Source: Dendrobates tinctorius (Eukaryota). Taken from it: 64,000 nucleotides of DNA. Below the pieces are notes generated by a model. The model was not told the DNA's origin. It made no database searches and saw only the letters and a list, made by a program, of their open reading frames with translations. Each line of letters begins with the position of its first letter. The stretch's first letter is position 1. Below, in pieces: positions 37,032 through 61,000 of the stretch. The stretch spans positions 6,448,001 to 6,512,000 of the forward strand of contig NW_027361819.1 in the NCBI RefSeq assembly GCF_039654945.1, given 5' to 3'. Both the position numbers and the translations under genes were made by a program.

Positions 37032-37688
37032 TGAAGAGTGCAGCACAAACCATGAGCGATGGCCGTCAGCGCTCTGATCCTTCGGGTTGAGGCCCGTAAT
37101 CTCTTTTTCTTATATCTGAGGGTTTGTTACAATTGTTTCCCGTCTACACCATGATCTGGGAGTGGAGCAATGGTCACCGATCTCTCTGCTGTCCTCATCG
37201 TTTGTTACAGTGTGTCAGCGCAGGGAGCGGGTATCACTCAGGACGGCACTGCGGGGTTATGCACCGATCCATAGTAACAACCCTCCAGCTCTGAGGAGTA
37301 GTCGCTCTGTGAAGAGTTTTTCCAGAATGCTGCAAAAAGTGAATAAACTTCTCCTGTTTGTCACCTTGGCCCCTCCCTCTTGGCCATGACAGTTTGAAAA
37401 GCCCATGACTTGGTGCACAGCGAATCCCCTTCATTGTCTTCTAGTTCCTCTCATTTTTAAGATCTCTGCTTGCTGTTGATCAGAGGATTGAGTGGGATGC
37501 GGCCCTTCACAAAAAGCAATAATATACCGCCACCTGCTGCTGTCACTGAGAATTGCAACTCATAAAGCAGAGTGACCCAACAAACTGCTGATTTCCCACA
37601 TTGCACTGCATGATTATTACACCTTTCAAAAATGTTATTAAATACGTATATGTGATGTCTGACAACAAGGAGGAGAAAAAGACAGCAG

Positions 37689-40375
37689 TCATGTATCTCT
37701 GTATACAGGGAGCTCCCCCTAGTGGTGGCTGCAGACAGGACCTTATCATGTATCTCTGTATACAGGGAGCTCCCCCTAGTGGTGGCTGCAGATAGGATCT
37801 TATCATGTATCTCTGTATACAGGGAGCTCCCCCTAGAGGTGACTGCAGACTGGATCTTATCATGTATCTCTGTATACAGGGAGCTCCCCCTAGTGGTGAC
37901 TGCAGACTGGATCTTATCATGTATCTCTGTATACAGGGAGCTCCCCCTAGTGGTGGCTGCAGACAGGATATTATCATGTATCTCTGTATACAGGGAGCTC
38001 CCCCTAGAGGTGACTGCAGACAGGATCTTATCATGTATCTCTGTGTACAGGGAGCGCCCCCTAGAGGTGACTGCAGACAGGATCTTATCATGTATCTCTG
38101 TATACAGGGAGCTCCCCCTAGTGGTGGCTGCAGACAGGATCTTATCATGTATCTCTGTATACAGGGAGCTCCCCCTAGTGGTGGCTGCAGACAGGATCTT
38201 ATCATGTATCTCTGTATACAGGGAGCTCCCCCTAGTGGTGACTGCAGACAGGATCTTATCATGTGTCTCTGTATACAGGGAGCTCCCCCTAGTGGTGGCT
38301 GCAGACAGGATCTTATCATGTGTCTCTGTATACAGGGAGCTCCCCCTAGTACTGGCTGCAGACAGGATCTTATCATGTATCTCTGTATACAGGGAGCTCC
38401 CCTAGTGGTGGCTGCAGACAGGATCTTATCATGTGTCTCTGTATACAGGGAGCTCCCCCTAGTGGTGGCTGCAGACAGGATCATATCATGTATCTCTGTA
38501 TACAGGCAGCTCCCTCTAGTGGTAACTGCAGATTGGATCTTATCATGTATCTCTGTATACAGGGAGCTCCCCCTAATGGTGACTGCAGACAGGATCTTAT
38601 CATGTATCTCTGTATACAGGGAGCTCCCCCTAGTGGTGGCTGCAGACAGGATCTAATCATGTATCTCTGTATACAGGGAGCTCCCCCTAGTGGTGGCTGC
38701 AGACAGGATCTTATCATGTATCTCTGTATACAGGGAGCTCCCCCTAGTGGTGACTGCAGAGAGGATCTTATCATGTATCTCTGTATACAGGGAGCTCCCC
38801 CTAGAGGTGAATGCAGCCAGGATCTTATCATGTATCTCTGTATACAGGGAGCTCCCCCTAGTGGTGGCTGCAGACAGGATCTTATCATGTATCTCTGTAT
38901 ACAGGAAGCTCCCCCTAGTGGTGGCTGCAGACAGGATCTTATCATGTATCTCTGTATACAGGGAGCTCCCCCTAGTGGTGACTGCAGACAGGATCTTATC
39001 ATGTGTCTCTGTATAATAAGAGCTCCCCCTAGTGGTGACTGCAGACAGGATCTTATCATGTATCTCTGTATACAGGGAGCTCCCCTTAGTGGTGGCTGCA
39101 AGCAGGATCTTATCATGTGTCTCTGTATACAGGGAGCTCCCCCTAGTGCTGGCTGCAGACAGGATCTTATCATGTATCTCTGTATACTGGGAGCTCCCCC
39201 TAGTGCTGGCTGCAGACAGGATCTTATCATGTATCTCTGTATACAGGGAGCTCCCCCTAGTGGTGGCTGCAGACAGGATCTTATCATGTATCTCTGTATA
39301 CAGGGAGCTCCCCCTAGTGGTGACTGCAGACAGGATCTTATCATGTATCTCTGTATACAGGGAGCTCCCCCTAGTGGTGACTGCAGACAGGATCTTATCA
39401 TGTATCTCTGTATATACGGAGCTCCCCCTAGTGGTGGCTGCAGACAGGATCTTATCATGTGTCTCTGTATACAGGGAGCTCCCCCTAGTGCTGGCTGCAG
39501 ACAGGATCTTATCATGTATCTCTGTATACAGGGAGCTCCCCCTAGTGGTGGCTGCAGACAGGATCTTATGTGTCTCTGTATACAGGGAGCTCCCCCTAGT
39601 GGTGGCTGCAGGCAGGATCTTATCATGTTTCTCTGTATACAGGGAGCTCCCCCTAGTGGTGACTGCAGACAAGATCTTGTCATGCATCTCTGTATACAGG
39701 GAGCTCCCCCTAGTGGTGACTGCAGACAGAATCTTGTCATGCATCTCTGTATACAGGGAGCTCCCCCTAGTGGTGACTGCAGACAGGATCTTATCCTGTA
39801 ACTCTGTATACAGGGAGCTCCCCCTAGTGGTGACTGCAGACAGGTTCTTATCCTGTATCTTTGTATACAGGGAGCTCCCCCTAGTGGTGACTGCAGACAG
39901 GATCTTATCATGTATCTCTGTATAATAAGAGCTCCCCCTAGTGGTGACTGCAGACAGGATCTTATCATGTATCTCTGTATACAGGGAGCTCCCCCTAGTG
40001 GTGGCTGCAGACAGGATCTTATCCTGTATCTTTGTATACAGGGAGCTCCCCCTAGTGGTGGCTGCAGACAGGATCTTATCCTGTATCTCTGTATACAGGG
40101 AGATCCCCCTAGTGGTGACTGCAGACAGGATCTTTTCATGTATCTCTGTATACAGGGAGCTCCCCCTAGTGGTGGCTGCAGGCAGGATCTTATGTATCTC
40201 TGTATACAGGGAGCTCCCTCTAGTGGTGACTGCAGACAGGATCTTATCATGTATCTCTGTATACAGGGAGCTCCCCCTAGTGGTGACTGCAGACAGGATC
40301 TTATGTATCTCTGTATACAGGGAGCTCCCCCTAGTGGTGACTGTAGACAGGATCTTACCACATATCTCTGTATTC
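37689..40375. repeat. 57-bp satellite (ATCATGTATCTCTGTATACAGGGAGCTCCCCCTAGTGGTGGCTGCAGACAGGATCTT)n with a CTCF-like motif per unit
   Basis: The periodicity is 19 aa, with ~47 copies. The reverse complement contains CCACTAGGGGGAGC. Confidence 0.93.
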
Positions 40376-40464
40376 AAGGAGACATATAGAGATACATAAG
40401 CCAGTGTATAACTGGGTGAATAAGACACAGGATTTGGTGCTCTGTATCAGAACATGTATAAACT

Positions 40465-41074: not shown

Positions 41075-44000
41075 TCACTCCGCTTTGGGCACCAGCTTTT
41101 GGGTGTCTTCAGGCGTTGAGCCATTGGTATCACCTTGGTCATCGGGCGTCTGATCCTTCTTCTTCTTCTCTATATGCCCAATAATCCCCCCCACACCTCC
41201 TCCAACTCCTGTCCCAATAGCCCCTCCGACGGACCCTCCGACTGCCCCGCCGATTATGATAGCCTCCGTAGCCAGGACCGTTCCAGCCACGGCTGCTCCC
41301 ACGATGCCTCCTGCCAGGGTGAGGATCCCTCCACCCACCGCACACCCGATCCCCACAGCGCACTTTGTGAAGCGCTTGGAGTATTCGGAGCAGAATTTCT
41401 CCACTTCTTGGTCCAGTAGAGCCTTCATCTCATAGGTCAGATTTATCCTCGCCGCGTCATTGCTGCCCCTCAGATTCTGCTCGTACTCCTGAAGGAGCCG
41501 TAAGGCCTCCTCGCTGACGACCTCCCTCATAGTAGAGGGCCTAACCTTCAACACCTTGATAGGAGAAGACGGGCTTGGAGCCTGAGGAGGACACGAGAAG
41601 ATACGTTACATTTCATGGTCTATGACTACAGCCTGGTATGGACAGATGGACGAGGCTGGCGATGATCTATAACCATGCCGCCATGGCCGATCGCTCCGGA
41701 TACAGAACGTCCCCACATGGGACGAGGGATCTTACCTTATTTGCAACAAAATCTTGGAATATTTTCACCGTGATCTTCAAGTTTTTGTGGTTTTCGAGGG
41801 CATAGAACATCTGGAGGAAGAGAACGAGGCGTTAATGTGATGACCGGAGACGAGGAGCCTCATCCCATCCTGTATGTAGGATACCGGGGTGAGAACTAAC
41901 GATGGAGGAGAAACGATACGGCCATGGGAACATGGAGGGGAATCATCCTGAGGGATTACATCCTATGTGTCCGACTGGATCTTATGTGTCCGACTGGATC
42001 TTATGTGTCCGACTGGATCTTATGTGTCCGACTGGATCTTATGTGTCCGACTGGATCTTATGTGTCCGACTGGATCTTATGTGTCCGACTGGATCTTATG
42101 TGTCCGACTGGATCTTATGTGTCCGACTGGATCTTATGTGTCCGACTGGATCTTATGTGTCCGACTGGATCTTATGTGTCCGACTGGATCTTATGTGTCC
42201 GACTGGATCTTATGTGTCCGACTGGATCTTATGTGTCCGACTGGATCTTATGTGTCCGACTGGATCTTATGTGTCCGACTGGATCTTATGTGTCCGACTG
42301 GATCTTATGTGTCCGACTGGATCTTATGTTTCTTGGAATGTTTCAGAACTATGTATCCTGAGTGTTTCCTGTATGTGAATGACATGGGACTGGACATCGG
42401 GGAGAGGCCGGGCCCCAGTCGGCCACGATTCATGCAGATTAGGGGTCACCGTGATTTTGTGGATTGTAGCGCGCTGCCTCTAGTGGACGACATAGGACAT
42501 GACACAATTACCTCTATAGGGGAAGCAAAGCTGAAGTTTTCTTGCTGCAAAGTACTGACGAAATCCTGAAAAATAAACAACACAGGAGAGAGAAGGGTTA
42601 ACAAAGAAAAAAAAGAAAAAGACATATATATAAAAAGTACATAGTGGCTGAGAAGGTGGACATAATGTCAGCTGAGCATCAGTAGATGCAGACATGGCCG
42701 GAATGGAACGGGAGAAAAAAACAGTTCAAGCGCAGTGAAATGGGGAGTCGGGGGGGATTCTGGTTTTTGGGGTTTTGTTTCTAGGCTTTCACTAATAATG
42801 TGAATTTTCTTCGTAGTCATTTTCAGTCCTTTATTGCCCGTGATAACCAGCTGTGTGCGGGCAGAAGAGGACGCGGTTACTTGGATTACAGGGGAGGATT
42901 TTTTTTTTATAATTTTGGGGGAGGACGGGAAGGCAAAAATGTGACCCTCAGCGGCATTAATTACGGGCACTCAGGGCGCCATCACTGAGTCAGGGGGCCC
43001 ATGCGTGCCTTGCCCGGGTGCCGGTAGCACACAATTTGACACTCTTCTTTTCCAATTTTTCTCCTTGCTGCTCGTTCTGCTCTCGGCATTAAAGCCTCCT
43101 CTTCAACCTTCAGTCCGGACACCCGTCGCTCATATTCTTCCTCTTTTTTCATCCACAAAAAACCGTACTGATGCCACGTCACGACCCCAATATAGCACTT
43201 GAGTCATTTAATGACCCTCTTAAAGGGATTACTTACAGAAAAGTCAGGGTTCCTCGCACCGTGCCATCGTTAGCTGATAAGAAGGAATTATTAACCCTTT
43301 TCTTGGTAATGGGTCTTATCAATTTACAAGAAATGATGAGCGAGGAGACTCTACACCGACAGGTCCCTAGCGCGGACCATAGCGCTACTGTAGCAGCGGA
43401 AAATGCCATATAACGCCCCGAGATAATCGTCAGAAGATCTGTGATAACATTTCATGTCCGACCTTCAGCATTCGGCCCAGCTGGCCGCACGTGATCCTCT
43501 CTCCATGGACATCGGTTTTACGGTGGAGCCAAACGTCTTCCATGACGCTGGAGATGTACGTGGTCAGGTGGCTCCTGAAGTCATCGTCCATGTCTGTGAA
43601 GAGAGGCAATAATCATCACACTGGAATATACAGGTATATTCTACCGGGTGGGAGCAGTCCTAGGGTCTCTTACCCTCCCGGCTTGCAGGTAATTTGGGGT
43701 GAGCAGTGTGTGGCGGGTGGAGGGGAAATGTAACACTGGATGGCGCCCATATCACGGTGGAGCAATGTTTCCATTGGTGGTGTCCCTCATCGCTCCGACT
43801 GATCGGTCTGTAGAGGATAGTCCCTCTAACTCGAGTCTTACCCGATAGCCGCCCTTCACTGGATCTCAGGAATGTTTTCCCCGGATGAGGCAGGAGGAAG
43901 CCGCTCACGGACGGACTGCGCAGAGTCTCCAGCACACGGCGGTATGTCGCGCTCTTCCGCAGCTTCTACAAAAACAGAGTGTAACTTTCCATCCTCAGTG

Positions 44001-47000
44001 TCAGGTTCGTACACCTCCTGGGATGGCCGATACCCACCCAAGATTTTATTCACGTAGCCATGTGTTGGAGACTTGCAGCTCCCCGAGTGTCACCAAAGTT
44101 TGGTGAAAAAACATCCAAATACAGACCGGCGCAGTTTGCAAAGGGCATCAGAAAAAAACCTCTTCTCAACAATTAGTGACCAATGACAACAAAAGACCTT
44201 TTGTAAATTGTGATAATCTGGAAGTCGGCACAAATTATGGCTCCGATGTGGTCACAGCCGGACAGTCCTAAATACAATAGGAGCTCTGTCATACCTCCGT
44301 CTCGTGCTCCAAGTAGGACTTTGCCGCTTCTCGACCACAGTCGTCGGGGTTATGCCAATCACGAACCAGAATATTCAGGTGCTAAAGTGTAGAAGACATC
44401 AAAGATGGAGAGATGCAACCACTGGGAGATGCAGGAAGTCAAAGGACGATGGGGACACTAAAAAGGCGGAGAAAGTATCTGCTCTGCTCCTAATCTTCAG
44501 GAAGGTGACCCCCACTGGTTTTCCATTGCTTATTACTGGAGCTCAGGTGGAGAGGACAAGCACTCAAGCTCACAATGGCTGACCGTAGTTGTGGTCCTTC
44601 ATCTACACATCACCAGAGCGGACATAGGAGATGCCATAAACTCAACCAGAGAAAAGAAGACAGCTACAGTAATGTGCCAAGAAGTAGTGGTCACGATTTT
44701 GGTAAAATAGCCTGAAGGTTGCTGGGAAGAAGCTGAAGACATTGACCAATGATGTCATCAAGATGCCAGAAATGAACCCTATCAAAAACTGCACTCTAGA
44801 GATCCTGCAAAACATTCCCTACAGGATTGGTAAGAATGTGTGGAGAGAGCGACGCCGAGAGGAGGTCACCTGTAGATACTGTAGACAGAAGGATTCCCCT
44901 GTGAGCTCCGACACGTGGAGATACATCTGAAAAGACACAAATACATCTCGATCGATCCAGTCCATCTCGTAGAAATGAAACTCAAGGTTACATGGGCAGA
45001 AGCCTCTTCATTCCACTGATACATTGTAGTGACAATGTAACGATGGTCCGTGATACATTCAAGGACTGACATCGAGGAGAACAACAACAGATTTTTGTAG
45101 AGATGTCCTCGACTTCCGTACCTCCAGATAATCCAGCTCTGTTGTTTTCAAGCTTGCATTAATGTTGAAGATCTGAGGACACAAACAAACGTCACATGAG
45201 AAGATGTTCATGAAGAGGATGGACGCCCCATCACCAAGACGTTACATGAAATTACATCAACCCCCACTAGAGATCGCGTGAGTGACACAAGTATAGTAAT
45301 CCTGCCATTGACAAGGGCGGTGGGCTACATCAATATCTAGGGGGTCTATACAAACTGCAGAGTGCAGCCACTCATTTATCTTTTATGCGGTTTGATTAGT
45401 GTGCCAAAACAAAAATATATATTGTGGTCATACATGTGTATTACACTCTCCAAAATCTCTTGAGGGAGTAAAGAGGTGTGTGGGCATGGGTATTCAGGGC
45501 TCCGCGAAGACCTCACATACCAGGTAGGAGCTGAGGAGCATGGACAAGGCGGAGAGCTTCACACAGGTCTCCCTATCACCTTCGATGTCCAGTGAACCCT
45601 CTGTGTCCAGGACAAACACGGCCATCTGTACAGAGAAGAAAGAAGGGTCACATCATAACCAAGGACCATGACGTCAATCGTGAAATCCAGTCTGTGCTTC
45701 TGTAAATGACATGTGATCGAGTAGCTGCAATCAGATCTGACATTCATCCATGATTTACAGAGACCGGAGATCGAAGCGATAATCGTTACATTGATCTTAC
45801 CGGCGGCTCACGATAAAGAGTGCGAGGACAGACCTGATGAGAGACATACATTGTGCCCTTTACCTTTTCTCCGTTCCTCTCCAGGATAAAGGGTCTACTC
45901 CACAACCATATCCCTTTGGTGAGACTGTCTGTCCCGGATCGCCACTCAAAACCGTGGAGGGGCTCGTCCTGTTCCCCTAGGCGGATCGGCTGACCCTTCT
46001 CCTATACAGAAAAAATAAATTTGTGAAATCATTCTGAAACTATTTTCTCAATACCAAGGATGGATCCCCATCAATAACATATCTCCAAATGCAAGTCCCC
46101 CTCCCAGGGTAAGCATGTGCCGAACTCCTCTATAAAAACAAGTAACTTTGGGGTGGAGCAGATACAAGCATGAGGCCCCCCTAACCCTTGACTTGAGGGG
46201 TGATGATATGATCCCATTTAGTCCCTGTGACATTGGATGTTGCCCTTTATCCTGCAGGTTATGACTCCTCACCAGGCTGTAAAGTGCTCTCAGAATATAG
46301 TTCATCAGGCTGGACTTTCCTCTTCTCTTCTCTCCAATCACACAGATAAGGCACAGGGGGTAATCGGAGATCTTACGGTCCAAAAAGCAGCCATCAAGAA
46401 CGGATTCATCCAGCCCCATTTTGTTGCAAGCATTGGTATAGACCAGCTGGACGGCACGTGGAGGAGCCTAGGAGGACATTAGTCATAGTCAATATTTACG
46501 CAGATCATTGCATCTCATATCTATGAAGTAGACAGATAGGAATGTCTAATGGTCTGCCATCTGTGATTACCCACAGGCTTCTCCTCCCCCATATCAAATA
46601 AACTTCCATGTATAACATTGTCACCGGTGTATTAACTGAAGACTGGCATGGCCCAAGTACCCATGGCGTTCCCTACTATTCTCTAACAACCCAAATGATA
46701 CAACAAAGGTATGGGGCCATGATAAAGGTTTGTGTCATACATCTTTATGAATGTGTGGAATTTGCACCAGATAAAACTGTTTCTCTGTATTTGGCATTAA
46801 ATTATTATCACTTTAAAGGCTCTAAAAACCACTTTTACCTACTAGTTTGGACTGTTATTTTTGACAGCTAAACCATTGGTATGAATCTTCAAGTATTAAC
46901 CCATTCATTGTCTGAACAGTGGGCGTGGTTGAAATACCCATGGCGGTCCCTACAGTTTTTCAATAGCCAACATAATACTCTTATCTGTGTTATGATAAGT

Positions 47001-47696
47001 TAACATAAGTCTGTGCTGTAAATCTCAGCTAAGCGTAGACTTTGTACAAGCTATAACCATTGTTACTCAGCGTTCATTATTAAGTTATAGAAGGGCACAC
47101 ATGCTACAGAACGTGCAACTTTCTTACTTTCACCTACCAGTCTGGACTGCTCTTCTTTGACAACCAGCTGAACCTTTGACACCAGTTGCTGCAGGCGGTA
47201 GGCAGGTATGAGCTGATCTCTCGGACAGACTTTCCTGCATTCTGGACAGCGATACCCAAAGGGTTGTGGGGTGGACCAGTAGGAAGAGATACAGGGTTTA
47301 CAAAAATTGTGCCCGCAGGTGATAGATACCGGGTCACGGAGCTCATGGAGACAAATGGAGCATGTGATATCGTCTTTTAGTTTGGAGAAATGTGCAGACC
47401 CTTCATTTGGCATGGCTGCCCTAATTCACAGAGACATCCGGCAGAAAGAAAAGGAAAGTTACAAGTCTCATCATGATAAGTTATGTGAAGTCAGGGAGTA
47501 AAGTAAAAGCAAAGTAGACGAAAACAGCAAAGCTGTGACGGAGCATGGATCAGACGATGCTGGGGATAAGTACAAACATGGACGACAATATGATAACGAG
47601 TCACATGACCTGCGCCTGGAATAAAAGGAGCTAAAGACTATAAACACCACAGGAAAAGTAAGGGATGACTTACGGCTTAGAGCGGCTGCTTCCCAT
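41075..47696 (-). CDS. RNF112-like: RNF112-like RING finger / GBP-atlastin-type GTPase, paralogue A (~609 aa, 13 coding exons)
   Basis: Coding exons: 47696-47674, 47420-47138, 46467-46273, 46001-45864, 45625-45521, 45172-45122, 44926-44870, 44381-44295, 43965-43842, 43593-43463, 42565-42512, 41810-41736, 41581-41075. All introns are GT-AG, the total of 1830 nt stays in frame, and phases are identical to gene B. Motifs: RING CSIC…CGHNFCKPC…CPEC, GEKRRGKS, SLTKGIW, DTEG, VRDW, FLLPHPG, and the Gly-rich tail AVGGGILTLAGGIVGAAVAG typical of RNF112. Confidence 0.93.
41963..42328. repeat. Perfect 19-bp minisatellite (CTTATGTGTCCGACTGGAT)x~19, intronic in gene A
   Basis: The copies are invariant and give a 19-aa periodicity in all three frames. 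Confidence 0.97.
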
Positions 47697-48565
47697 GTGG
47701 CGAGTGCAGGGCGCCCTGATATCTATGGAGCCTGCGGGACAGAGGTCGATGACTGACATAGGAGGAGAAAAAGCAAACATATCAGACATGGAAACACCCT
47801 GACGGAGTTAACCCCTGAGCTACTGACACCGCGCAGAAAAGGCGAAGTACAGGAAGATCAACAGCCCTGACTGCACAGTGTATGCGCTCCATCACCTAGA
47901 TTATGTCCATACACTGTATGCCCAGTTATAGCCACACATCGTACGTGTTCCATAGCGTCACAAAAGTTACAAACATGACCATAAATGTATAAAGATACAT
48001 GCATTATTATTACAGCAAAACATACAATACACAGGATAACAGAGGGGACATCAAGAAAACTCCCACAGATGACAGAAAGGATGTAAATCCGGCACCAATG
48101 ACAACACACACAGCGGATGCGGGGATGCGAAGGTGGATGCCAAGGAACAGCAGAAAGGGCTATGAAAAATCATCTCACAAGAAGATCGACAGCAGTGTAA
48201 AGTAACCATGATGCATAGCGGGTATCACCTATAAGCACCCGACAAGCGTGGCTTCTTCCAAAGGGGCAAAATGCATGTCAGGTGCAGACAGGTGATACCT
48301 GAGTCATTCCTTTTGGCTGTTTGCACATGTTGTGTTTTTGCTCTCTATTACTAGCACCAGGTCTTGATGTCAGCTCTGTGTTTGGACAATTCACAGTTGT
48401 CATCAACCCCAAGACCCATTACTCCGATTGTCACTGTACCAAGGCAGGAGGAGTCGGGCGAAGTGCCAGAATTGACGAATTGCACATGACGCTCCAATTC
48501 TGTGTAGGCTGCGGACTGCTCTAATTAGGCTGGGAAGGGGCCATTATCCATGGACTATCCCAGAC

Positions 48566-51219
48566 TGTGTATCCGTACACCCCCGTGTCTCCATCGTATC
48601 CGTACACCCCCCCCGTGTCTCCATCGTATCCGTACAACCCCCCCGTGTCCCCATCGTATCCCAACACCCCCGTGTCCCCATCGTATCCGTACACCCCCCC
48701 GTGTCCCCATCGTATCCGTACACCCCCCCGTGCCTCCATCGTATCCGTACACCCCCCCGTGTCTCCATCGTATCCGTACACCCCCCCCGTGTCCCCATCG
48801 TATCCGTACACCCCCCCGTGTCCCCATCGTATCCGTACACCCCCCGTGTCTCCATCGTATCCGTACACCCCCCGTGTCTCCATCGTATCCGTACACCCCC
48901 CCCGTGTCCCCATCGTATCCGTACACCCCCCCCGTGTCCCCATCGTATCCGTACACCCCCCGTGTCTCCATCGTATCCGTACACCCCCCGTGTCTCCATC
49001 GTATCCGTACACCCCCCCCCGTGTCCCCATCGTATCCGTACACCCCCCGTGTCTCCATCGTATCCGTACACCCCCCGTGTCTCCATCGTATCCGTACACC
49101 CCCCCGTGTCCCCATCGTATCCGTACACCCCCCCGTGTCTCCATCGTATCCGTACACCCCCCCCGTGTCCCCATCGTATCCGTACACCCCCCCCCCGTGT
49201 CCCCATCGTATCCGTACACCCCCCGTGTCCCCATCGTATCCGTACACCCCCCGTGTCTCCATCGTATCCGTACATCCCCCCCGTGTCCCCATCGTATCCG
49301 TACACCCCCCGTGTCCCCATCGTATCCGTACACCCCCCGTGTCCCCATCGTATCCGTACACCCCCCGTGTCCCCATCGTATCCGTACACCCCCCGTGTCC
49401 CCATCGTATCCGTACACCCCCCGTGTCTCCATCGTATCCGTACACCCCCCGTGTCCCCATCGTATCCGTACACCCCCCGTGTCCCCATCGTATCCGTACA
49501 CCCCCCGTGTCTCCATCGTATCCGTACATCCCCCCCGTGTCCCCATCGTATCCGTACACCCCCCGTGTCCCCATCGTATCCGTACACCCCCCGTGTCCCC
49601 ATCGTATCCGTACACCCCCCGTGTCCCCATCGTATCCGTACACCCCCCGTGTCCCCATCGTATCCGTACACCCCCCGTGTCTCCATCGTATCCGTACACC
49701 CCCCGTGTCCCCATCGTATCCGTACACCCCCCGTGTCCCCATCGTATCCGTACAACCCCCCCCCCGTGTCTCCATCGTATCCGTACACCCCCCCCCCCGT
49801 GTCTCCATCGTATCCGTACACCCCCCCCCCCGTGTCCCCATCGTATCCGTACACCCCCCGTGTCTCCATCGTATCCGTACACCCCCCCGTGTCTCCATCG
49901 TATCCGTACACCCCCCCCGTGTCCCCATCGTATCCGTACACCCCCCCGTGTCTCCATCGTATCCGTACACCCCCCCCGTGTCCCCATCGTATCCGTACAC
50001 CCCCCCCCCCCGTGTCCCCATCGTATCCGTACACCCCCCGTGTCCCCATCGTATCCGTACACCCCCCGTGTCTCCATCGTATCCGTACATCCCCGTGTCC
50101 CCATCGTATCCGTACACCCCCCCCCCGTGTCTCCATCGTATCCGTACACCCCCCCCCCCGTGTCTCCATCGTATCCGTACACCCCCCCCCCGTGTCCCCA
50201 TCGTATCCGTACATCCCCCGTGTCTCCATCGTATCCGTACCCCCCCCCGTGTCTCCATCGTATCCGTACACCCCCCCCCCCCGTGTCTCCATCGTATCCG
50301 TACACCCCCCCCGTGTCTCCATCGTATCCGTACACCCCCCCCCCCCCGTGTCCCCATCGTATCCGTACATCCCCGTGTCCCCATCGTATCCGTACACCCC
50401 CCCCCCCGTGTCCCCATCGTATCCGTACATCCCCCGTGTCTCCATCGTATCCGTACACCCCCCCGTGTCTCCATCGTATCCGTACACCCCCCCCGCGTGT
50501 CTCCATCGTATCCGTACACCCCCCCCCCGTGTCCCCATCGTATCCGTACATCCCCGAGTCCCCATCGTATCCGTACACCCCCCCCCCGTGTCCCCATCGT
50601 ATCCGTACACCCCCCCCCCCCCCGTGTCCCCATCGTATCCGTACATCCCCCGTGTCCCCATCGTATCCGTACATCCCCCGTGTCTCCATCGTATCCGTAC
50701 ATCCCCCGTGTCTCCATCGTATCCGTACACCCCCCCGTGTCTCCATCGTATCCGTACACCCCCCCCCCCGTGTCCCCATCGTATCCGTACACCCCCCCCC
50801 CCCCGTGTCCCCATCGTATCCGTACATCCCCCGTGTCTCCATCGTATCCGTACACCCCCCCGTGTCCCCATCGTATCCGTACACCCCCCCCCCCGTGTCC
50901 CCATCGTATCCGTACACCCCCCCCCCCCCCGTGTCCCCATCGTATCCGTACATCCCCCGTGTCTCCATCGTATCCGTACACCCCCCCGTGTCCCCATCGT
51001 ATCCGTACACCCCCCCGTGTCTCCATCGTATCCGTACACCCCCCCGTGTCTCCATCGTATCCGTACACCCCCCCCGTGTCTCCATCGTATCCGTACACCC
51101 CCCGTGTCCCCATCGTATCCGTACACCCCCCACCGTGTCCCCGTCGTATCCGTACACCCCCCACCGTGTCCCCGTCGTATCCGTACACCCCCGTGTCCCC
51201 GTCGTATCCGTACACCCCC
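48566..51219. repeat. C-rich ~28-35-bp minisatellite (CCATCGTATCCGTACA-Cn-GTGTCY)n in the 5' intron of gene A
   Basis: It has a constant core with variable poly-C. There are no stops in any of the six frames, which explains the huge spurious ORFs. Confidence 0.95.
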
Positions 51220-51781
51220 GGTCAGTGCTCCGCAGCCCCCCGTTCCCCCCCCCGGTCAGTGCTCCGCAGCCCCCCGGTCAGTGCTCCGCAGCCCCCCGTT
51301 CCCCCCCCCGGTCAGTGCTCCGCAGCCCCCCGGTCAGTGCTCCGCAGCCCCCCGGTCCCCCGCCCGGTCAGTGCTCCGCAGCCCCCCGGTCAGTGCTCCG
51401 CAGCCCCCCGGTCCCCCGCCCGGTCAGTGCTCCGCAGCCCCCCGGTCAGTGCTCCGCAGCCCCCCGTTCCCCCCCCCCCGGTCAGTGCTCCGCAGCCCCC
51501 CGTTCCCCCCCCCGGTCAGTGCTCCGCAGCCCCCCGGTCAGTGCTCCGCAGCCCCCCGTTCCCCCCCCCCGGTCAGTGCTCCGCAGCCCCCCGGTCAGTG
51601 CTCCGCAGCCCCCCGTTCCCCCCCCCGGTCAGTGCTCCGCAGCCCCCCGGTCAGTGCTCCGCAGCCCCCCGTTCCCCCCCCCGGTCAGTGCTCCGCAGCC
51701 CCCCGGTCCCCCCCCCGGTCAGTGCTCCGCAGCCCCCCGTTCCCCCCCCCGGTCAGTGCTCCGCAGCCCCCCGTTCCCCCC
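51219..51781. repeat. C-rich ~23/35-bp minisatellite (GGTCAGTGCTCCGCAGCCCCCC[GTT-Cn])n
   Basis: It is directly visible and abuts the putative exon-1 splice donor. Confidence 0.93.
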
Positions 51782-51791
51782 GTGTCTGTAC

Positions 51792-51835
51792 CTCTCCTCT
51801 CCTCCCTTCTCTTCTCTTTCTCCTCAGTTTGCAGG
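51792..51835 (-). other. Putative non-coding exon 1 of gene A
   Basis: A purine-rich segment ends in the donor GAG|GTACAG at 51792/51791, immediately downstream of the promoter motifs. It could splice to the acceptor cccgcag|G at 47731. The TSS is approximate. Confidence 0.55.
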
Positions 51836-51920
51836 AAGCCGGAACAGAAAGTGAAAGTGCTGGCGCCGCCCCCCGCGCTGTGATTGGCGGAGACTTGTGC
51901 AGGAGGCGGAGCTTTCCCTG
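51836..51920 (-). promoter_or_regulatory. Gene A promoter: ISRE/IRF-E, GC box, CCAAT box, NF-kB-like site
   Basis: GAAAGTGAAAGT at 51847-51858; CCGCCC at 51866-51871; ATTGG (CCAAT on the minus strand) at 51883-51887; GGGAAAGCTCC (minus strand) at 51908-51918. Confidence 0.7.
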
Positions 51921-52083
51921 TGTCTGGTGACTGATACATTTGCATCCCGCAGCCGCTGTCTGATTAACCCTTCGCTCTCCGGTGTCAGCCTCCTCCGCCC
52001 TCACTGCGGCCTCTCCGGGTGATCAGCTCTGGTTTCTCCAGGAGATTTTAGATTTTTTATTGCTGATTTTACCTTTAAATACT

Positions 52084-55000
52084 GGAGGAGAGCGGTGCGG
52101 CCCCTGAGTGAGGAGAGCAGTGTGAGGAGAGTACTGCGGCCCCTGAGTGAGGAGAGCAGTGTGAGGAGAGTACTGCGGCCCCTGTGTGAGGAGAGCAGTG
52201 TGAGGAGAGTACTGCGGCCCCTGTGTGAGGAGAGCAGTGTGAGGAGAGTACTGCGGCCCCTGTGTGAGGAGAGCAGTGTGAGGAGAGTACTGCGGCCCCC
52301 GTGTGAGGAGAGCAGTGTGAGGAGAGTACTGCGGCCCCCGTGTGAGGAGAGCAGTGTGAGGAGAGCGGTGCGGCCCCCGTGTGAGGAGAGTACTGCGGCC
52401 CCCGTGTGAGGAGAGCAGTGTGAGGAGAGCAGTGTGAGGAGAGCAGTGTGAGGAGAGTACTGCGGCCCCTGTGTGAGGAGAGCAGTGTGAGGAGAGTACT
52501 GCGGCCCCTGTGTGAGGAGAGCAGTGTGAGGAGAGCGGTGCGGCCCCCGTGTGAGGAGAGCAGTGTGAGGAGAGCGGTGCGGCCCCCGTGTGAGGAGAGC
52601 AGTGTAAGGAGAGCAGTGCGGCCCCTGTGTGAGGTGAGCAGTGTGAGGAGAGCGGTGGGGCCCCCGTGTGGGGAGAGCAGTGTGAGGAGAGCAGTGTGGG
52701 AAGAGCGGTGCGGCCCCTGTGTGAGGAGAGCAGTGTGAGGAGAGTACTGCGGCCCCCGTGTGAGGAGAGCAGTGTGAGGAGAGTACTGCGGCCCCCGTGT
52801 GAGGAGAGCAGTGTGAGGAGAGTACTGCGGCCCCCGTGTGAGGAGAGCAGTGTGAGGAGAGTACTGTGGCCCCCGTGTGAGGAGAGCAGTGTGAGGAGAG
52901 TACTGTGGCCCCAGTGTGAGGAGAGCAGTGTGAGGAGAGCGGTGCGGCCCCTGTGTGAGGAGAGTACTGCAGCCCCCGTGTGAGGAGAGCAGCGTGAGGA
53001 GAGTACTGCGGCCCCAGTGTGAGGAGAGCGGTGCGGCCCCCGTGTGAGGAGAGCGGTGTGAGGAGAGCGGTGCGGCCCCCGTGTGAGGAGAGCGGTGCGG
53101 CCCCCGTGTGGGGAGAGCAGTGTGAGGAGAGCAGTGTGAGGAGAGCGGTGCGGCCCCCGTGTGAGGAGAGCAGTGTGGGGAGAGCGGTGCGGCCCCCGTG
53201 TGGGGAGAGCAGTGTGGGGAGAGCGGTGCGGCCCCCGTGTGAGGAGAGCAGTGTGGGGAGAGCGGTGCGGCCCCCTTGTGAGGAGAGCAGTGTGGGGAGA
53301 GCGGTGCGGCCCCCGTGTGAGGAGAGCAGTGTGGGGAGAGCGGTGCGGCCCCCGTGTGAGGAGAGCAGTGTGGGGAGAGCGGTGCGGCCCCCGTGTGAGG
53401 AGAGCAGTGTGGGGAGAGCGGTGCGGCCCCCGTGTGGGGAGAGCGGTGCGGCCCCCGTGTGGGGAGAGCAGTGTGGCCCCCGTGTGGGGAGAGCAGTGTG
53501 AGGAGAGCGGTGGGGCCCCCGTGTGGGGAGAGCAGTGTGAGGAGAGCGGTGGGGCCCCCGTGTGGGGAGAGCAGTGTGAGTAGAGCGGTGCGGCCCCCGT
53601 GTGGGGAGAGCAGTGTGAGGAGAGCGGTGCGGCCCCCGTGTGAGGAGAGCAGTGTGAGGAGAGCAGTGTGAGGAGAGAGGTGGGGCCCCCGTGTGGGGAG
53701 AGCAGTGTGAGTAGAGCGGTGCGGCCCCCGTGTGGGGAGAGCAGTGTGAGGAGAGCGGTGCGGCCCCCGTGTGAGGAGAGCAGTGTGAGGAGAGCGGTGC
53801 GGCCCCCGTGTGAGGAGAGCAGTGTGAGGAGAGCGGTGCGGCCCCCGTGTGAGGAGAGCAGTGTGAGGAGAGCGGTGCGGCCCCCGTGTGAGGAGAGCAG
53901 TGTGGGGAGAGCAGTGTGAGGAGAGCGGTGCGGCCCCCGTGTGAGGAGAGCAGTGCGGCCCCCGTGTGAGGGGAGCAGTGTGAGGAGAGCGGTGTGAGGA
54001 GAGCGGTGCGGCCCCCGTGTGAGGAGAGCAGTGCGGCCCCCGTGTGAGGGGAGCAGTGTGAGGAGAGCGGTGTGAGGAGAGCGGTGCGGCCCCTGTGTGA
54101 GGAGAGCAGTGTGAGGAGAGCGGTGCGGCCCCTGTGTGAGGAGAGCAGTGTGGGGAGAGCGGTGGGGCCCCCGTGTGGGGAGAGCAGTGTGAGGAGAGCG
54201 GTGCGGCCCCTGTGTGAGGAGAGCAGTGCGAGGAGAGCGGTGCGGCCCCCGTGTGAGGAGAGCGGTGCGGCCCCCGTGTGAGGAGAGCGGTGCGGCCCCC
54301 GTGTGAGGAGAGCGGTGCGGCCCCCGTGTGAGGAGAGCGGTGCGGCCCCCGTATGAGGAGAGCAGTGCGGCCCCTGTGTGGGGAGAGCAGTGTGAGGAGA
54401 GCGGTGGGGCCCCCGTGTGGGGAGAGCAGTGTGAGGAGAGCAGTGCGGCCCCCGTGTGGGGAGAGCAGTGTGAGGAGAGCAGTGTGAGGATAGCGGTGGG
54501 GCCCCCGTGTGGGGAGAGCAGTGTGAGGAGAGCAGTGCGGCCCCTGTGTGGGGAGAGCCGTGTGAGAAGAGCGGTGTGGCCCCCGTGTGAGGAGAGCGGT
54601 GAGAGGAGAGCGGTGCGGCCCCCGTGTGAGGAGAGCAGTGCGGCCCCCGTGTGAGGAGAGCAGTGTGAGGAGAGCGGTGCGGCCCCCGTGTGACGAGAGC
54701 AGTGTGAGGAGAGCGGTGCGGCCCCGTGTGAGGAGAGCAGTGTGAGGAGAGCGGTGCGGCCCCTGTGTGAGGAGAGCAATGTGGCCCCCGTGTGAGGAGA
54801 GCAGTGGGAGGAGAGCGGTGCGGCCCCTGTGTGAGGAGAGCGGTGTGAGGAGAGCGGTGCGGCCCCTGTGTGAGGAGAGCGGTGCGGCCCCTGTGTGAGG
54901 AGAGCGGTGCGGCCCCTGTGTGAGGAGAGCGGTGCGGCCCCTGTGTGAGGAGAGCAGTGTGGGGAGAGCTCTGTGAGGAGAGCAGTGCGGCCCCTGTGTG

Positions 55001-58000
55001 AGGAGAGCAGTGTGAGGAGAGTGGTGCGGCCCCCGTGTGAGGAGAGCAGTGTGAGGAGAGCGGTGCGGCCCCCGTGTGAGGAGAGCAGTGTGAGGAGAGC
55101 AGTGCGGCCCCTGTGTGAGGTGAGCAGTGTGAGGAGAGCGGTGGGGCCCCCGTGTGGGGAGAGCAGTGTGGGGAGAGCGGTGCGGCCCCTGTGTGAGGAG
55201 AGCAGTGTGGGGAGAGCTCTGTGAGGAGAGCGGTGCGGCCCCGTGTGAGGAAAGCAGTGCGGCCCCTGTGTGAGGAGAGCAGTGTGAGGAGAGCGGTGCG
55301 GCCCCCGTGTGAGGAGAGCAGTGTGAGGAGAGCTGTGCGGCCCCCGTGTGAGGAGAGCAGTGTGAGGAGAGCAGTGCGGCCCCTGTGTGAGGTGAGCAGT
55401 GTGAGGAGAGCGGTGGGGCCCCCGTGTGGGGAGAGCAGTGTGGGGAGAGCGGTGCGGCCCCTGTGTGAGGAGAGCAGTGTGGGAAGAGCGGTGCGGCCCC
55501 TGTGTGAGGAGAGCAGTGTGAGGAGAGTACTGCGGCCCCCGTGTGAGGAGAGCAGTGTGAGGAGAGTACTGCGGCCCCCGTGTGAGGAGAGCAGTGTGAG
55601 GAGAGTACTGCGGCCCCAGTGTGAGGAGAGCAGTGTGAGGAGAGCGGTGCGGCCCCTGTGTGAGGAGAGTACTGCAGCCCCCGTGTGAGGAGAGCAGCGT
55701 GAGGAGAGTACTGCGGCCCCAGTGTGAGGAGAGCAGTGTGAGGAGAGCAGTGTGAGGAGAGCGGTGTGAGGAGAGCTGTGCGGCCCCCGTGTGAGGAGAG
55801 CAGTGTGAGGAGAGCGGTGCGGCCCCCGTGTGGGGAGAGCAGTGTGAGGAGAGCGGTGCGGCCCCCGTGTGGGGAGAGCAGTGTGAGGAGAGCGGTGCGG
55901 CCCCCGTGTGAGGAGAGCAGTGTGGGGAGAGCGGTGCGGCCCCCGTGTGAGGAGAGCAGTGTGGGGAGAGCAGTGTGGGGAGAGCAGTGCGGCCCCCGTG
56001 TGAGGAGAGCTGTGTGGGGAGAGCGGTGCGGCCCCCGTGTGAGGAGAGCAGTGTGGGGAGAGCGGTGCGGCCCCCGTGTGAGAAGAGCAGTGTGGGGAGA
56101 GCGGTGCGGCCCCCGTGTGAGGAGAGCAGTTTGGGGAGAGCGGTGCGGCCCCCGTGTCAGGAGAGCAGTGTGGGGAGAGCGGTGCGGCCCCCGTGTGGGG
56201 AGAGCAGTGTGGGGAGAGCGGTGGGGCCCCCGTGTGGGGAGAGCAGTGTGAGGAGAGCGGTGCGGCCCCCGTGTAGGGAGAGCAGTGTGAGGAGAGCGGT
56301 GGGGCCCCCGTGTGGGGAGAGCAGTGTGAGTAGAGCGGTGGGGCCCCCGTGTGGGGAGAGCAGTGTGAGGAGAGCGGTGCGGCCCCCGTGTGAGGAGAGC
56401 AGTGTGGGGAGAGCGGTGCGGCCCCCGTGTGAGGAGAGCAGTGTGAGGAGAGCGGTGCGGCCCCCGTGTGAGGAGAGCAGTGTGGGGAGAGCGGTGCGGC
56501 CCCCGTGTGGGGAGAGCAGTGTGGGGAGAGCGGTGCGGCCCCCGTGTGGGGAGAGCAGTGTGAGGAGAGCGGTGGGGCCCCCGTGTGGGGAGAGCAGTGT
56601 GAGGAGAGCGGTGGGGCCCCCGTGTGGGGAGAGCAGTGTGAGGAGAGCGGTGCGGCCCCTGTGTGGGGAGAGCAGTGTGAGGAGAGAGGTGGGGCCCCCG
56701 TGTGGGGAGAGCAGTGTGAGTAGAGCGGTGCGGCCCCCGTGTGGGGAGAGCAGTGTGAGGAGAGCGGTGTGGCCCCCGTGTGAGGAGAGCAGTGTGAGGA
56801 GAGAGGTGGGGAGAGCAGTGTGAGTAGAGCGGTGCGGCCCCCGTGTGGGGAGAGCAGTGTGAGGAGAGCGGTGCGGCCCCCGTGTGAGGAGAGCAGTGTG
56901 AGGAGAGCGGTGCGGCCCCCGTGTGAGGAGAGCAGTGTGAGGAGAGCGGTGCGGCCCCCTTGTGAGGAGAGCAGTGTGGGGAGAGCGGTGGGGCCCCCGT
57001 GTGGGGAGAGCAGTGTGAGGAGAGCAGTGTGAGGAGAGCGGTACGGCCCCTGTGTGAGGAGAGCAGTGTGAGGAGAGCAGTGCGGCCCCCGTGTGAGGAG
57101 AGCAGTGTGAGGAGAGCGGTGGGGCCCCCGTGTGAGGAGAGCAGTGGGAGGAGAGCGGTGGGACCCCCGTATGAGGAGAGCAGTGTGGGGAGAGCGGTGC
57201 GGCCCCCGTGTGAGGAGAGCAGTGCGGCCCCTGTGTGGGGAGAGCGGTGGGGCCCCCGTGTGAGGAGAGCAGTGTGGGGAGAGCGGTGGGACCCCCGTAT
57301 GAGGAGAGCAGTGTGGGGAGAGCGGTGCGGCCCCCGTGTGAGGAGAGCAGTGTGAGGAGAGCGGTGCGGCCCCCGTGTGACGAGAGCAGTGTGAGGAGAG
57401 CGGTGTGAGGAGAGCGGTGCGGCCCCGTGTGAGGAGAGCAGTGTGAGGAGAGCGGTGCGGCCCCTGTGTGAGGAGAGCAGTGTGAGGAGAGCGGTGCGGC
57501 CCCTGTGTGAGGAGAGCAGTGTGAGGAGAGCGGTGCGGCCCCTGTGTGAGGAGAGCAATGTGAGGAGAGCAGTGTGGCTCCTGTGTGGGGAGAGCGGTGC
57601 AGCCCCCCTGTGAGGAGAGCAATGTGAGGAGAGCAGTGCGGCCCCCGTGTGAGGAGAGCAGTGTGAGGAGAGCGGTGCGGCCCCCGTGTGACGATAGCAG
57701 TGTGAGGAGAGCGGTGCGGCCCCGTGTGAGGAGAGCAGTGTGAGGAGAGCGGTGCGGCCCCTGTGTGAGGAGAGCAGTGTGAGGAGAGCGGTGCGGCCCC
57801 TGTGTGAGGAGAGCAGTGTGAGGAGAGCAGTGCGGCCCCTGTGTGAGGTGAGCAGTGTGGGGAGAGCTGTGCGGACTCTGTGTGAGGAGAGCAGTGTGAG
57901 GAGAGCGGTGCGGCCCCTGTGTGAGGAGAGCGGTGCGGCCCCTGTGTGAGGAGAGCGGTGCGGCCCCTGTGTGAGGAGAGCAATGTGAGGAGAGCAGTGT

Positions 58001-61000
58001 GGCTCCTGTGTGGGGAGAGCGGTGCAGCCCCCCTGTGAGGAGAGCAATGTGAGGAGAGCAGTGCGGCTCCTGTGTGGGGAGAGCAGTGCGGCTCCTGTGT
58101 GGGGAGAGCAGTGCGGCTCCTGTGTGGGGAGAGCAGTGCGGCTCCTGTGTGGGGAGAGCAGTGCGGCTCCTGTGTGGGGAGAGCAGTGCGGCTCCTGTGT
58201 GGGGAGAGCAGTGCGGCTCCTGTGTGGGGAGAGCAGTGCGGCTCCTGTGTGGGGAGAGCAGTGCGGCCCCTGTGTGGGGAGAGCGGTGGGGCCCCCGTGT
58301 GAGCAGAGCAGTGTGGGGAGAGCGGTGGGACCCCCGTATGAGGAGAGCAGTGTGGGGAGAGCGGTGGGGCCCCCGTGTGAGGAGAGCAGTGCGGCCCCTG
58401 TATGAGGAGAGCAGTGTGAGGAGAGCGGTGCGGCCCCCGTGGGAGGAGAGCGGTGCGGCCCCCGTGTGAGGAGAGCGGTGTGGCCCCCGTGTGAGGAGAG
58501 CAGTGTGAGGAGAGCGGTGCGGCCCCCGTGTGAGGAGAGCAGTGTGAGGAGAGCGGTGCGGCCCCGGTGTGAGGAGAGCAGTGTGGGGAGAGCGGTGGGG
58601 CCCCCGTGTGGGGAGAGCAGTGTGAGGAGAGCAGTGTGAGGAGAGCGGTGCGGCCCCGGTGTGAGGAGAGCAGTGTGGGGAGAGCGGTGGGGCCCCCGTG
58701 TGGGGAGAGCAGTGTGAGGAGAGCAGTGTGAGGAGAGCGGTGCGGCCCCTGTGTGAGGAGAGCAGTGTGAGGAGAGCAGTGTGAGGAGAGCGGTGCGGCC
58801 CCCGTGTGAGGAGAGCAGTGTGAGGAGAGCGGTGCGGCCCCTGTGTGAGGAGAGCAGTGTGAGGAGAGCAGTGTGAGGAGAGCGGTGCGGCCCCCGTGTG
58901 AGGAGAGCAGTGTGAGGAGAGCGGTGCGGCCCCCGTGTGAGGAGAGCAGTGTGAGGAGAGCGGTGCGGCCCCCGTGTGAGGAGAGCAGTGTGAGGAGAGC
59001 GGTGCGGCCCCCGTGTGAGGAGAGCAGTGTGAGAGCGGTGGGGCCCCCGTGTGAGGAGAGCAGTGGGAGGAGAGCGGTGCGGCCCCCGTGTGAGGAGAGC
59101 AGTGTGAGGAGAGCGGTGCGGCCCCCGTGTGAGGAGAGCAGTGTGAGGAGAGCGGTGCTGCCCCCGTGTGAGGAGAGCAGTGTGAGGAGAGCGGTGCGGC
59201 CCCGGTGTGAGGAGAGCAGTGTGGGGAGAGCGGTGGGGCCCCCGTGTGGGGAGAGCAGTGTGAGGAGAGCAGTGTGAGGAGAGCGGTGCGGCCCCCGTGT
59301 GTGGAGAGCAGTGTGAGGAGAGCGGTGCGGCCCCTGTGTGAGGAGAGCGGTGCGGCCCCTGTGTGAGGAGAGCGGTGCGGCCCCTGTGTGAGGAGAGCGG
59401 TGCGGCCCCTGTGTGAGGAGAGCGGTGCGGCCCCCGTGTGAGGAGAGCGGTGCGGCCCCCGTGTGAGGAGAGCGGTGCGGCCCCCGTATGAGGAGAGCAG
59501 TGCGGCCCCTGTGTGGGGAGAGCAGTGTGAGGAGAGCGGTGGGGCCCCCGTGTGGGGAGAGCAGTGTGAGGAGAGCAGTGCGGCCCCCGTGTGGGGAGAG
59601 CAGTGTGAGGAGAGCGGTGGGGCCCCTGTGTGAGGAGAGCAGTGTGAGGAGAGCAGTGCGGCCCCTGTGTGAGGTGAGCAGTGTGAGGAGAGCGGTGGGG
59701 CCCCCGTGTGGGGAGAGCTGTGCGGCCTCTGTGTGAGGAGAGCAGTGTGAGGAGAGCGGTGCGGCCCCTGTGTGAGGAGAGCAGTGTGAGGAGAGCGGTG
59801 CGGCCCCTGTGTGAGGAGAGCGGTGCGGCCCCTGTGTGTGGAGAGCAATGTGAGGAGAGCAGTGTGGCTCCTGTGTGGGGAGAGCGGTGCAGCCCCCCTG
59901 TGAGGAGAGCAATGTGAGGAGAGCAGTGTGGCTCCTGTGTGGGGAGAGCAGTGCGGCTCCTGTGTGGGGAGAGCAGTGCGGCCCCTGTGTGGGGAGAGCG
60001 GTGGGGCCCCCGTGTGGGGAGAGCGGTGGGACCCCCGTATGAGGAGAGCAGTGTGGGGAGAGCGGTGGGGCCCCCGTGTGAGGAGAGCAGTGCGGCCCCT
60101 GTATGAGGAGAGCAGTGTGAGGAGAGCGGTGGGGCCCCCGTGTGAGGAGAGCAGTGGGAGGAGAGCGGTGCGGCCCCCGTGTGAGGAGAGCAGTGTGAGG
60201 AGAGCGGTGCGGCCCCCGTGTGAGGAGAGCAGTGTGAGGAGAGCGGTGCGGCCCCGGTGTGAGGAGAGCAGTGTGGGGAGAGTGGTGGGGCCCCCGTGTG
60301 GGGAGAGCAGTGTGAGGAGAGCAGTGTGAGGAGAGCGGTGCGGCCCCTGTGTGAGGAGAGCAGTGTGAGGAGAGCAGTGCGGCCCCCGTGTGAGGAGAGC
60401 AGTGTGAGGAGAGCGGTGCGGCCCCCGTGTTTGGAGAGCAGTGTGAGGAGAGCAGTGCGGCCCCTGTGTGAGGTGAGCAGTGTGGGGAGAGCTGTGCGGC
60501 CTCTGTGTGAGGAGAGCAGTGTGAGGAGAGCGGTGCGGCCCCTGTGTGAGGAGAGCAGTGTGAGGAGAGCGGTGCGGCCCCTGTGTGAGGAGAGCGGTGC
60601 GGCCCCTGTGTGAGGAGAGCAATGTGAGGAGAGCAGTGTGGCTCCTGTGTGGGGAGAGCGGTGCAGCCCCCCTGTGAGGAGAGCAATGTGAGGAGAGCAG
60701 TGTGGCTCCTGTGTGGGGAGAGCGGTGCAGCCCCCCTGTGAGGAGAGCAATGTGAGGAGAGCAGTGTGGCTCCTGTGTGGGGAGGGCAGTGCGGCTCCTG
60801 TGTGGGGAGGGCAGTGCGGCTCCTGTGTGGGGAGAGCAGTGCGGCTCCTGTGTGGGGAGAGCAGTGCGGCCCCTGTGTGGGGAGAGCGGTGGGGCCCCCG
60901 TGTGAGGAGAGCAGTGTGAGGAGAGCGGTGCGGCCCCTGTGTGAGGAGAGCAGTGCGAGGAGAGCGGTGCGGCCCCCGTGTGAGGAAAGCGGTGCGGCCC

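Follow-up and report, generated by a model that had tools for sequence, protein, structure and literature searches.

A 58-nt micro-exon supplies a frog RNF112 gene with a Met-Gly start predicted to be N-myristoylated

A 58-nt micro-exon lies within the stretch of Dendrobates tinctorius DNA analysed here (64,000 nucleotides of contig NW_027361819.1, referred to below as the window), and was confirmed to be real and part of a functional mRNA. In the reading that we favour, with a probability of about 0.68, it is the first coding exon of gene A and gives the protein a Met-Gly start with predicted N-myristoylation, while retention of the following intron gives a second form of the transcript. Gene A and its tandem neighbour, termed paralogue B, are frog co-orthologues of RNF112 (ZNF179/neurolastin). 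The original prediction had described the exon as hidden. It was indeed missed by the open reading frame track, yet it already opens the RefSeq models of this D. tinctorius gene and of at least 20 further amphibian genes; since XP_073403624.1 includes the micro-exon, it was hidden from that track alone, and at the level of genome annotation there is nothing new. The exon is real but ordinary, and the predicted lipidation is well supported yet unproven. The features to which the text refers are as follows, all on the minus strand.

51792 to 51944, minus strand: exon 1 and promoter island, with donor AG/gtacag at 51792/51791 and in-frame ATGs at 51944 and 51938.
47732 to 47752, minus strand: 21-nt extension of the micro-exon, behind the upstream acceptor ttctcctcctatgtcag; 5′ UTR in the Met-Gly reading, residues VIDLCPAG in isoform X1.
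47674 to 47731, minus strand: 58-nt micro-exon, comprising 35 nt of 5′ UTR and 23 coding nt (seven codons, MGSSRSK, plus two bases for Pro), with a phase 2 end; donor junction in RNA.
47694 to 47696, minus strand: Met-Gly start codon, context CGCCACATGG, with ATG GGA at 47696-47691.
47421 to 47673, minus strand: 253-nt intron, spliced or retained, from retained-form contigs in four runs and open reading frame analysis.
47138 to 47420, minus strand: RING-finger exon (C3HC4), with Met-11 at 47413-47411; both junctions in RNA, GT-AG boundaries checked.
41736 to 46467, minus strand: ten internal coding exons, atlastin/GBP-like GTPase and middle domain, from three RNA junctions and guided splicing.
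46467-46273, 46001-45864, 45625-45521, 45172-45122 and 44926-44870, minus strand: internal exons 1-5.
44381-44295, 43965-43842, 43593-43463, 42565-42512 and 41810-41736, minus strand: internal exons 6-10.
41075 to 41581, minus strand: last coding exon, with stop codon TGA at 41077-41075 and the Gly/Ala-rich hydrophobic residues 512-578 (41371-41171).
34945 to 35091, minus strand: first coding exon of paralogue B (MEARRHR...), Arg/Lys-rich, without Gly-2, with a phase 2 junction to the RING exon.

The sequence of the micro-exon matches what had been predicted for 47731-47674, including the MGSSRSK start. Its acceptor reads ...gtcccgcag/G with exon base 1 at 47731, the exon opens GCTCC and runs to CGCCAC before the ATG, and its 3′ part is ATG GGA AGC AGC CGC TCT AAG CC, followed by gtaagt (47696-47674 on the minus strand, the donor being 47673-47668). 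The downstream acceptor, ...gaattag/G, lies at 47421/47420, and joining in phase 2 to the RING exon gives MGSSRSKPAAMPNEG. The initiator Met directly precedes Gly (ATG GGA, 47696-47691), as in substrates of N-myristoyltransferase (NMT). The bases at -3 are also those claimed earlier, C at ATG 47696 and G at ATG 47413, with G and C, respectively, at +4.

RNA contigs were placed on positions 45400-48400 from four runs, X1 and X17 (organism A) and X5 and X6 (organism B, 3-5% diverged). The phase 2 splice of the original prediction was found in them, as a joint at 47674/47420 (CT..AC ends on the plus strand) at a depth of 44.6 in X17 and 11 in X6. Three further canonical GT-AG introns (47137-46468, 46272-46002 and 45863-45626) are removed in the contigs, and the contig sets therefore represent RNA. 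A processed retrocopy was rejected as the source of the spliced contigs, because retained forms stand beside the spliced ones and the contig sets have the size of transcriptomes. Splicing the 13 coding exons from the window yields a protein of 609 aa that is identical at 609/609 positions to XP_073403624.1 (here P0171), RING finger protein 112-like isoform X2 [Dendrobates tinctorius] (RefSeq); the first three internal exons were taken from RNA junctions and the others from GT-AG splicing guided by P0171. The surroundings are repeat-rich. Long GC-rich satellite arrays flank the promoter island (48520-51780 and 52100-64000), tandem repeats fill 37540-40430, 33700-34740 and 41900-42380 (between the two paralogues, within intron 1 of B and within intron 12 of gene A), and very long spurious open reading frames occur in all frames of these arrays and repeats.

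The 5′ edge of the micro-exon may vary (47731 or 47752), the coding part being identical either way. The acceptor 21 nt upstream (cag at 47753/47752) is the one chosen in X6 and in RefSeq isoform X1, and also in a transcript contig from a hyloid (L003, approximately 81% identical to a Dendropsophus protein); the contig from X6 extends as far as 47754 before passing into the end of exon 1, whose last 11 nt are joined to 47752. An X17 contig (depth 26.9) halts exactly at cag/G (47731) and continues as Illumina adapter sequence, which would fit an RNA 5′ end at this position or a library artefact. The 35 nt of 5′ UTR before the Met-Gly codon (47697-47731) share the block TATCAGGGCG.CCTGC...CAC with positions 61-95 of L003, whose protein is only about 80% identical to that of its nearest hyloid relatives. 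The leaders of the ranoid and the newt lack it. The block may serve to control translation or splicing; a coding role was rejected, the substitutions showing no apparent synonymous bias and L003 having an in-frame stop upstream.

The N-terminus encoded by the micro-exon has the features of an NMT substrate. By the PROSITE-type rule, position 3 is not charged, aromatic or Pro, position 6 is S, T, A, G, C or N, and position 7 is not Pro. MGSSRSKP, with Gly-2, Ser-3, Ser-6, Lys-7 and Pro-8 all present, fits this classic pattern, G-{EDRKHPFYW}-x(2)-[STAGCN]-{P}, and Lys-7 is the Src-type determinant. Compared with MGSSKSKPK of avian c-Src and v-Src, seven of eight residues are equal, with Gly-2, Ser-6, the critical Lys-7 and a second basic residue in common; the sole difference over the eight residues is conservative, Arg at position 5 in gene A and Lys in Src. 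The avian Src signal serves as a transferable myristoylation tag (PMC4966669), and Kaplan et al. (1988) describe the first seven residues of v-Src as sufficient for the signal, with Lys-7 critical. Membrane binding, according to PMC2289653, needs N-terminal lysines in addition to myristate. The likeness to Src is convergent and not homologous, gene A encoding a RING/GTPase protein and not a kinase, and since only two basic residues follow its Gly-2, myristate and basic patch together would be weaker than in Src. The start M-G-x-x-x-S-K that had been called an ideal substrate is supplied by an exon that is used, while the modification itself is a prediction; action of NMT on the frog protein is inferred from the Src and PROSITE-type rules. 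Motif quality and deep conservation give good support to a predicted N-myristoylation of Gly-2 in gene A. In the literature searched, no link of RNF112, ZNF179 or neurolastin with myristoylation was found, the co-occurrences being single mentions, incidental or off-topic by title.

To follow the start across the family, 356 proteins were gathered by a full-library search with the RING exon and two word searches, and 173 of these have both RING and P-loop. Relatives from the RING-exon search align from residue 9-10, the same 8-residue offset as in the gene A model, and have N-termini such as MGNSTNKP, MGNTNKKQ and MGNKNTKR. A Met-Gly start within 40 residues of the RING is present in 75 of the 173. 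Of these, 62 have Asn and 7 have Ser at position 3, 64 have N, T, S or A at position 6, and 62 have Lys at position 7; the classic myristoylation pattern is fitted by 64/75, and around 11 carry Lys at position 6, a residue not favoured there by the simple rule. Ten more of the 173 have an internal MGN, MGS, MGT or MGG just before the RING, mostly behind seemingly over-extended models. The start occurs, usually with Lys-7, in frogs, salamanders, squamates, turtles, lungfish and coelacanth, and Dendrobates, Phyllobates, two Ranitomeya species, Anomaloglossus and Eleutherodactylus share all of the first eight residues. Conservation of MGxxxS among orthologues, on which the earlier claim had partly been staked, was in this way borne out over the sarcopterygian range. 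Exon structure in the other genomes was judged from proteins and three transcript contigs. A word search with the RING exon only, over a limited length window, gave one match, a 100-aa Staurois fragment beginning at the equivalent of Met-11, which is uninformative on the micro-exon. The protein set covers reptile and turtle paralogues in its last word search, with mammalian and bird RNF112 N-termini lying outside it, and a pattern search of all gathered proteins found no mammal-like sequence. Mammalian RNF112 may have this motif too, as MGN..., downstream of the start that is annotated.

Several members of the family begin differently. P0190 of Phyllobates terribilis (595 aa), a third dendrobatid member placed inside the A clade on a long branch, starts MAESSEGSVHF without the Met-Gly exon and is about 68% identical to gene A in the RING exon; no copy of it was seen in the 64-kb window. 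In turtles the RNF112-like genes have expanded greatly, to dozens of models in each species and with extra domains fused to some, and many of these proteins begin at the RING (MERLREDVTCSICL) without the Met-Gly exon.

In a tree of 52 proteins (a quick search with SH-aLRT support only), frog clade A is sister to frog clade B (SH-aLRT 100) and gene A falls with the dendrobatid A-type proteins inside RNF112. The two frog clades together form the sister group of the RNF112 proteins of salamanders and amniotes; outside A+B lie the proteins of salamanders, squamates, turtles, lungfish and coelacanth, and all of these outgroups have the Met-Gly start. Since every outgroup to the frog duplication has it, the tree indicates that the Met-Gly start is ancestral for the RNF112 family and was lost by paralogue B. 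The latter spans 35091 to 26429 in the window (33647-26429 beyond its first coding exon) with exon phases as in gene A and a different first coding exon, where tblastn with residues 1-51 of the Anomaloglossus B-type protein gave 78% identity at 34945-35091. This Arg/Lys-rich exon (MEARR...QRKR.KRRPRRER) is conserved in B-type proteins of many frogs. The A/B duplication falls on the frog stem in the tree, and the sole crystallised member of the family (PDB 9jju) is B-type.

The domains of the gene A protein are those of RNF112. The RING matches PF15227 (E 3.5e-12) and PF00097 (E 1.9e-10) at 47413-47066, and PF02263, the GBP/atlastin-type G domain, is recorded for P0171. The long hydrophobic C-terminal segment that had been claimed was also found, as 67 residues (512-578) rich in Gly, Ala, Val and Ile with hydropathy windows above 1.4; the last exon gives in addition a weak holin-like hydrophobic match. 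Against known structures, the A-type relative from X. laevis gave 8e-122 with PDB 9jju and 8e-41 with atlastin-1. The X. laevis protein RNF112.L (PDB 9jju-9jjx; PMC12012479) has the same C3HC4 RING, G domain, middle domain and C-terminal hydrophobic region as gene A. However, it is B-type, starting MEGPS..., Arg-rich and without Gly-2, whereas gene A belongs to the sister A clade with the Met-Gly start; the crystallised protein scores 914 bits to P0217 (B-type) versus 411 bits to the A-type P0178. In that 2025 structural paper the N-terminus was removed and lipidation is unmentioned, and foreign transmembrane domains were grafted onto RNF112 to test membrane remodelling (PMC12012479).

Other large GTPases and ligases offer partial parallels. 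Atlastins, the nearest solved structures after RNF112 (E ~1e-40), use a C-terminal hydrophobic hairpin as anchor but have neither a RING nor an N-terminal lipidation motif. Irga6 and other interferon-inducible IRG GTPases are N-myristoylated on a Met-Gly start. The original prediction likened gene A to Irga6, both being large GTPases with this start, but the G domain proved to be of the atlastin/GBP type: for P0171 only GBP and RING families are recorded, with no IIGP-type G domain, so the comparison with Irga6 is an analogy only. Moreover, the IRG GTPases lack the RING and the C-terminal hydrophobic region of gene A. Neuralized-like 1 is a RING E3 that is recruited to the membrane through an N-terminal myristate (Koutelou et al. 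2008); it resembles gene A in combining a RING E3 with an N-terminal myristate motif, but its other domains are unrelated and it has no GTPase.

The 253-nt intron between the micro-exon and the RING exon is also found unspliced. Intron-retaining contigs are present in all four runs, at depths of 50.6 in X1, 18.4 in X17, 182 in X5 and 5.2 in X6. These values are exon-like, whereas the neighbouring introns of the same four runs stand at 0-4, and carry-over of genomic DNA or of pre-mRNA in general was rejected as the source on this ground. One X1 contig runs from the GTPase exons straight through the intron. The contigs listed for X1 and X5 show the intron-retaining form only, so the spliced form may be minor in some tissues, and in X17 and X6 the spliced path has the greater depth of the two, contig depths not being reliable as isoform ratios. 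The acceptor of this intron, with pyrimidines at 10/18 positions, is the weakest of the 13 (the others having 12-16). When the intron is retained, TAA at 47672-47670 ends the Met-Gly frame as an 8-codon uORF (MGSSRSKP and stop, ATG...CCG TAA), another six upstream ATGs come after it, and the frame is closed by TGA at 47428-47426, ahead of ATG 47413. Retention hence places a non-lipidated or silenced output at the RNA level, and it explains the non-lipidated form in RNA better than leaky scanning alone, the route proposed originally. Leaky scanning to Met-11 is possible, given a pyrimidine at -3 of the first ATG in four species and the keeping of Met-11 in 22/24 frog A-type proteins.

Three other accounts of the micro-exon were weighed. 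That it is chance sequence or assembly noise outside any functional mRNA has next to no probability: its small size is the only point in favour, against a junction seen in the RNA contigs of two organisms, a window model identical to RefSeq and orthologous exons in dozens of species, on which evidence chance and noise were rejected. A more serious account, though an unlikely one, is that the main protein starts at Met-11 (MPNEG...) and is unlipidated, the Met-Gly codon being mostly the start of a regulatory uORF or skipped by leaky scanning. It draws on the retained form, which occurs in every run, is the sole form listed in X1 and X5 and ends the Met-Gly frame after 8 codons; on the -3 pyrimidine of the first ATG in the four species; and on Met-11 itself, which stands at a fixed distance from the RING in 22/24 frog A-type proteins and begins many RefSeq isoforms of other frogs. 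However, Gly-2 and Lys-7 are kept from coelacanth to frogs, including lineages without an equivalent of Met-11, and a uORF needs neither residue. Furthermore, seven upstream ATGs precede Met-11 in the retained form, so that its reading frame should be translated poorly there, whereas the spliced forms are the assembled transcripts in three other species and have the deeper path in X17 and X6.

Less likely again is that the main product is RefSeq isoform X1, read from ATG 51944 through the 47752 acceptor, in which Met-Gly is internal and without a role in lipidation. RefSeq carries both forms, the Met-Gly start (609 aa) and one that is 70 aa longer. The longer, XP_073403623.1 (P0357; 679 aa), starts MQMYQSPDTG... 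in exon 1, follows this reading exactly and adds its 70 aa by way of the acceptor 21 nt upstream of 47731; were it the main mRNA, the Gly would be residue 72 and could not be myristoylated. The frame is open in the window up to ATGs 51944 and 51938, because exon 1 has CAA where L003 has an in-frame TAA, the 47752 acceptor is joined to the end of exon 1 in X6, and a TATA-like tatttaaa was noted by eye at approximately 52079-52072. Against this, the 70-aa extension spans the CCAAT, GC-box and ISRE-like motifs of the island and is missing from the models of all other species listed, and L003, besides its TAA in exon 1, begins within the ISRE-like motif and not upstream of it; on these points we think that the extension is an annotation of promoter or 5′ UTR sequence. 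RefSeq isoform X2 starts at Met-Gly, which requires an mRNA without ATGs 51944 and 51938. Translation from these two ATGs would need a transcription start further upstream, and a transcription start downstream of 51938 would make ATG 47696 the first AUG in the spliced mRNA. In L003 and in two further contigs, ranoid L001 (87% identical to a Nanorana protein) and newt L002 (94% identical to a Lissotriton protein), an in-frame stop lies upstream of the Met-Gly codon with no in-frame ATG between them, and the codon has a pyrimidine at -3 and G at +4.

The reading in which the micro-exon encodes a lipidated start implies the following course of events. A short exon 1 is spliced to the micro-exon at 47731 or 47752, ATG 47696 opens the frame, and the junction to the RING exon, in phase 2 after 23 coding bases, leads into MGSSRSKPAAMPNEG.... 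Methionine aminopeptidase would then remove Met-1, and N-myristoyltransferase would place myristate on Gly-2 during translation, Ser-6 and Lys-7 being favourable as they are in Src. Arg-5, Lys-7 and the lipid would jointly hold the RING end at the cytosolic face of a membrane, with the C-terminal hydrophobic region in the same membrane. Paralogue B exchanged the ancestral Met-Gly start for its Arg/Lys-rich exon after the duplication on the frog stem, and the intron-retaining mRNA should give little protein, any of it from Met-11 and unlipidated.

A broader proposal, which we put at somewhat below even odds, is that N-myristoylation may be the ancestral membrane-targeting device of the RNF112 family as a whole, retained between coelacanth and reptiles and in frog paralogue A, lost in B, the sole member with a studied structure and biochemistry, and gated in frogs by the retained intron and its 8-codon uORF. 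Splicing would then decide between lipidated and silent or non-lipidated output, possibly under an interferon-type promoter. RNF112 joins a dynamin-superfamily GTPase to an E3 ligase, and its route to endosomal and mitochondrial membranes is unsettled. As the structurally studied frog paralogue is without the Met-Gly start, results from that paralogue may miss a feature of the family. A conserved Src-like myristoylation start, if true, would provide a second anchor at the RING end and fix the ligase domain at the membrane surface.
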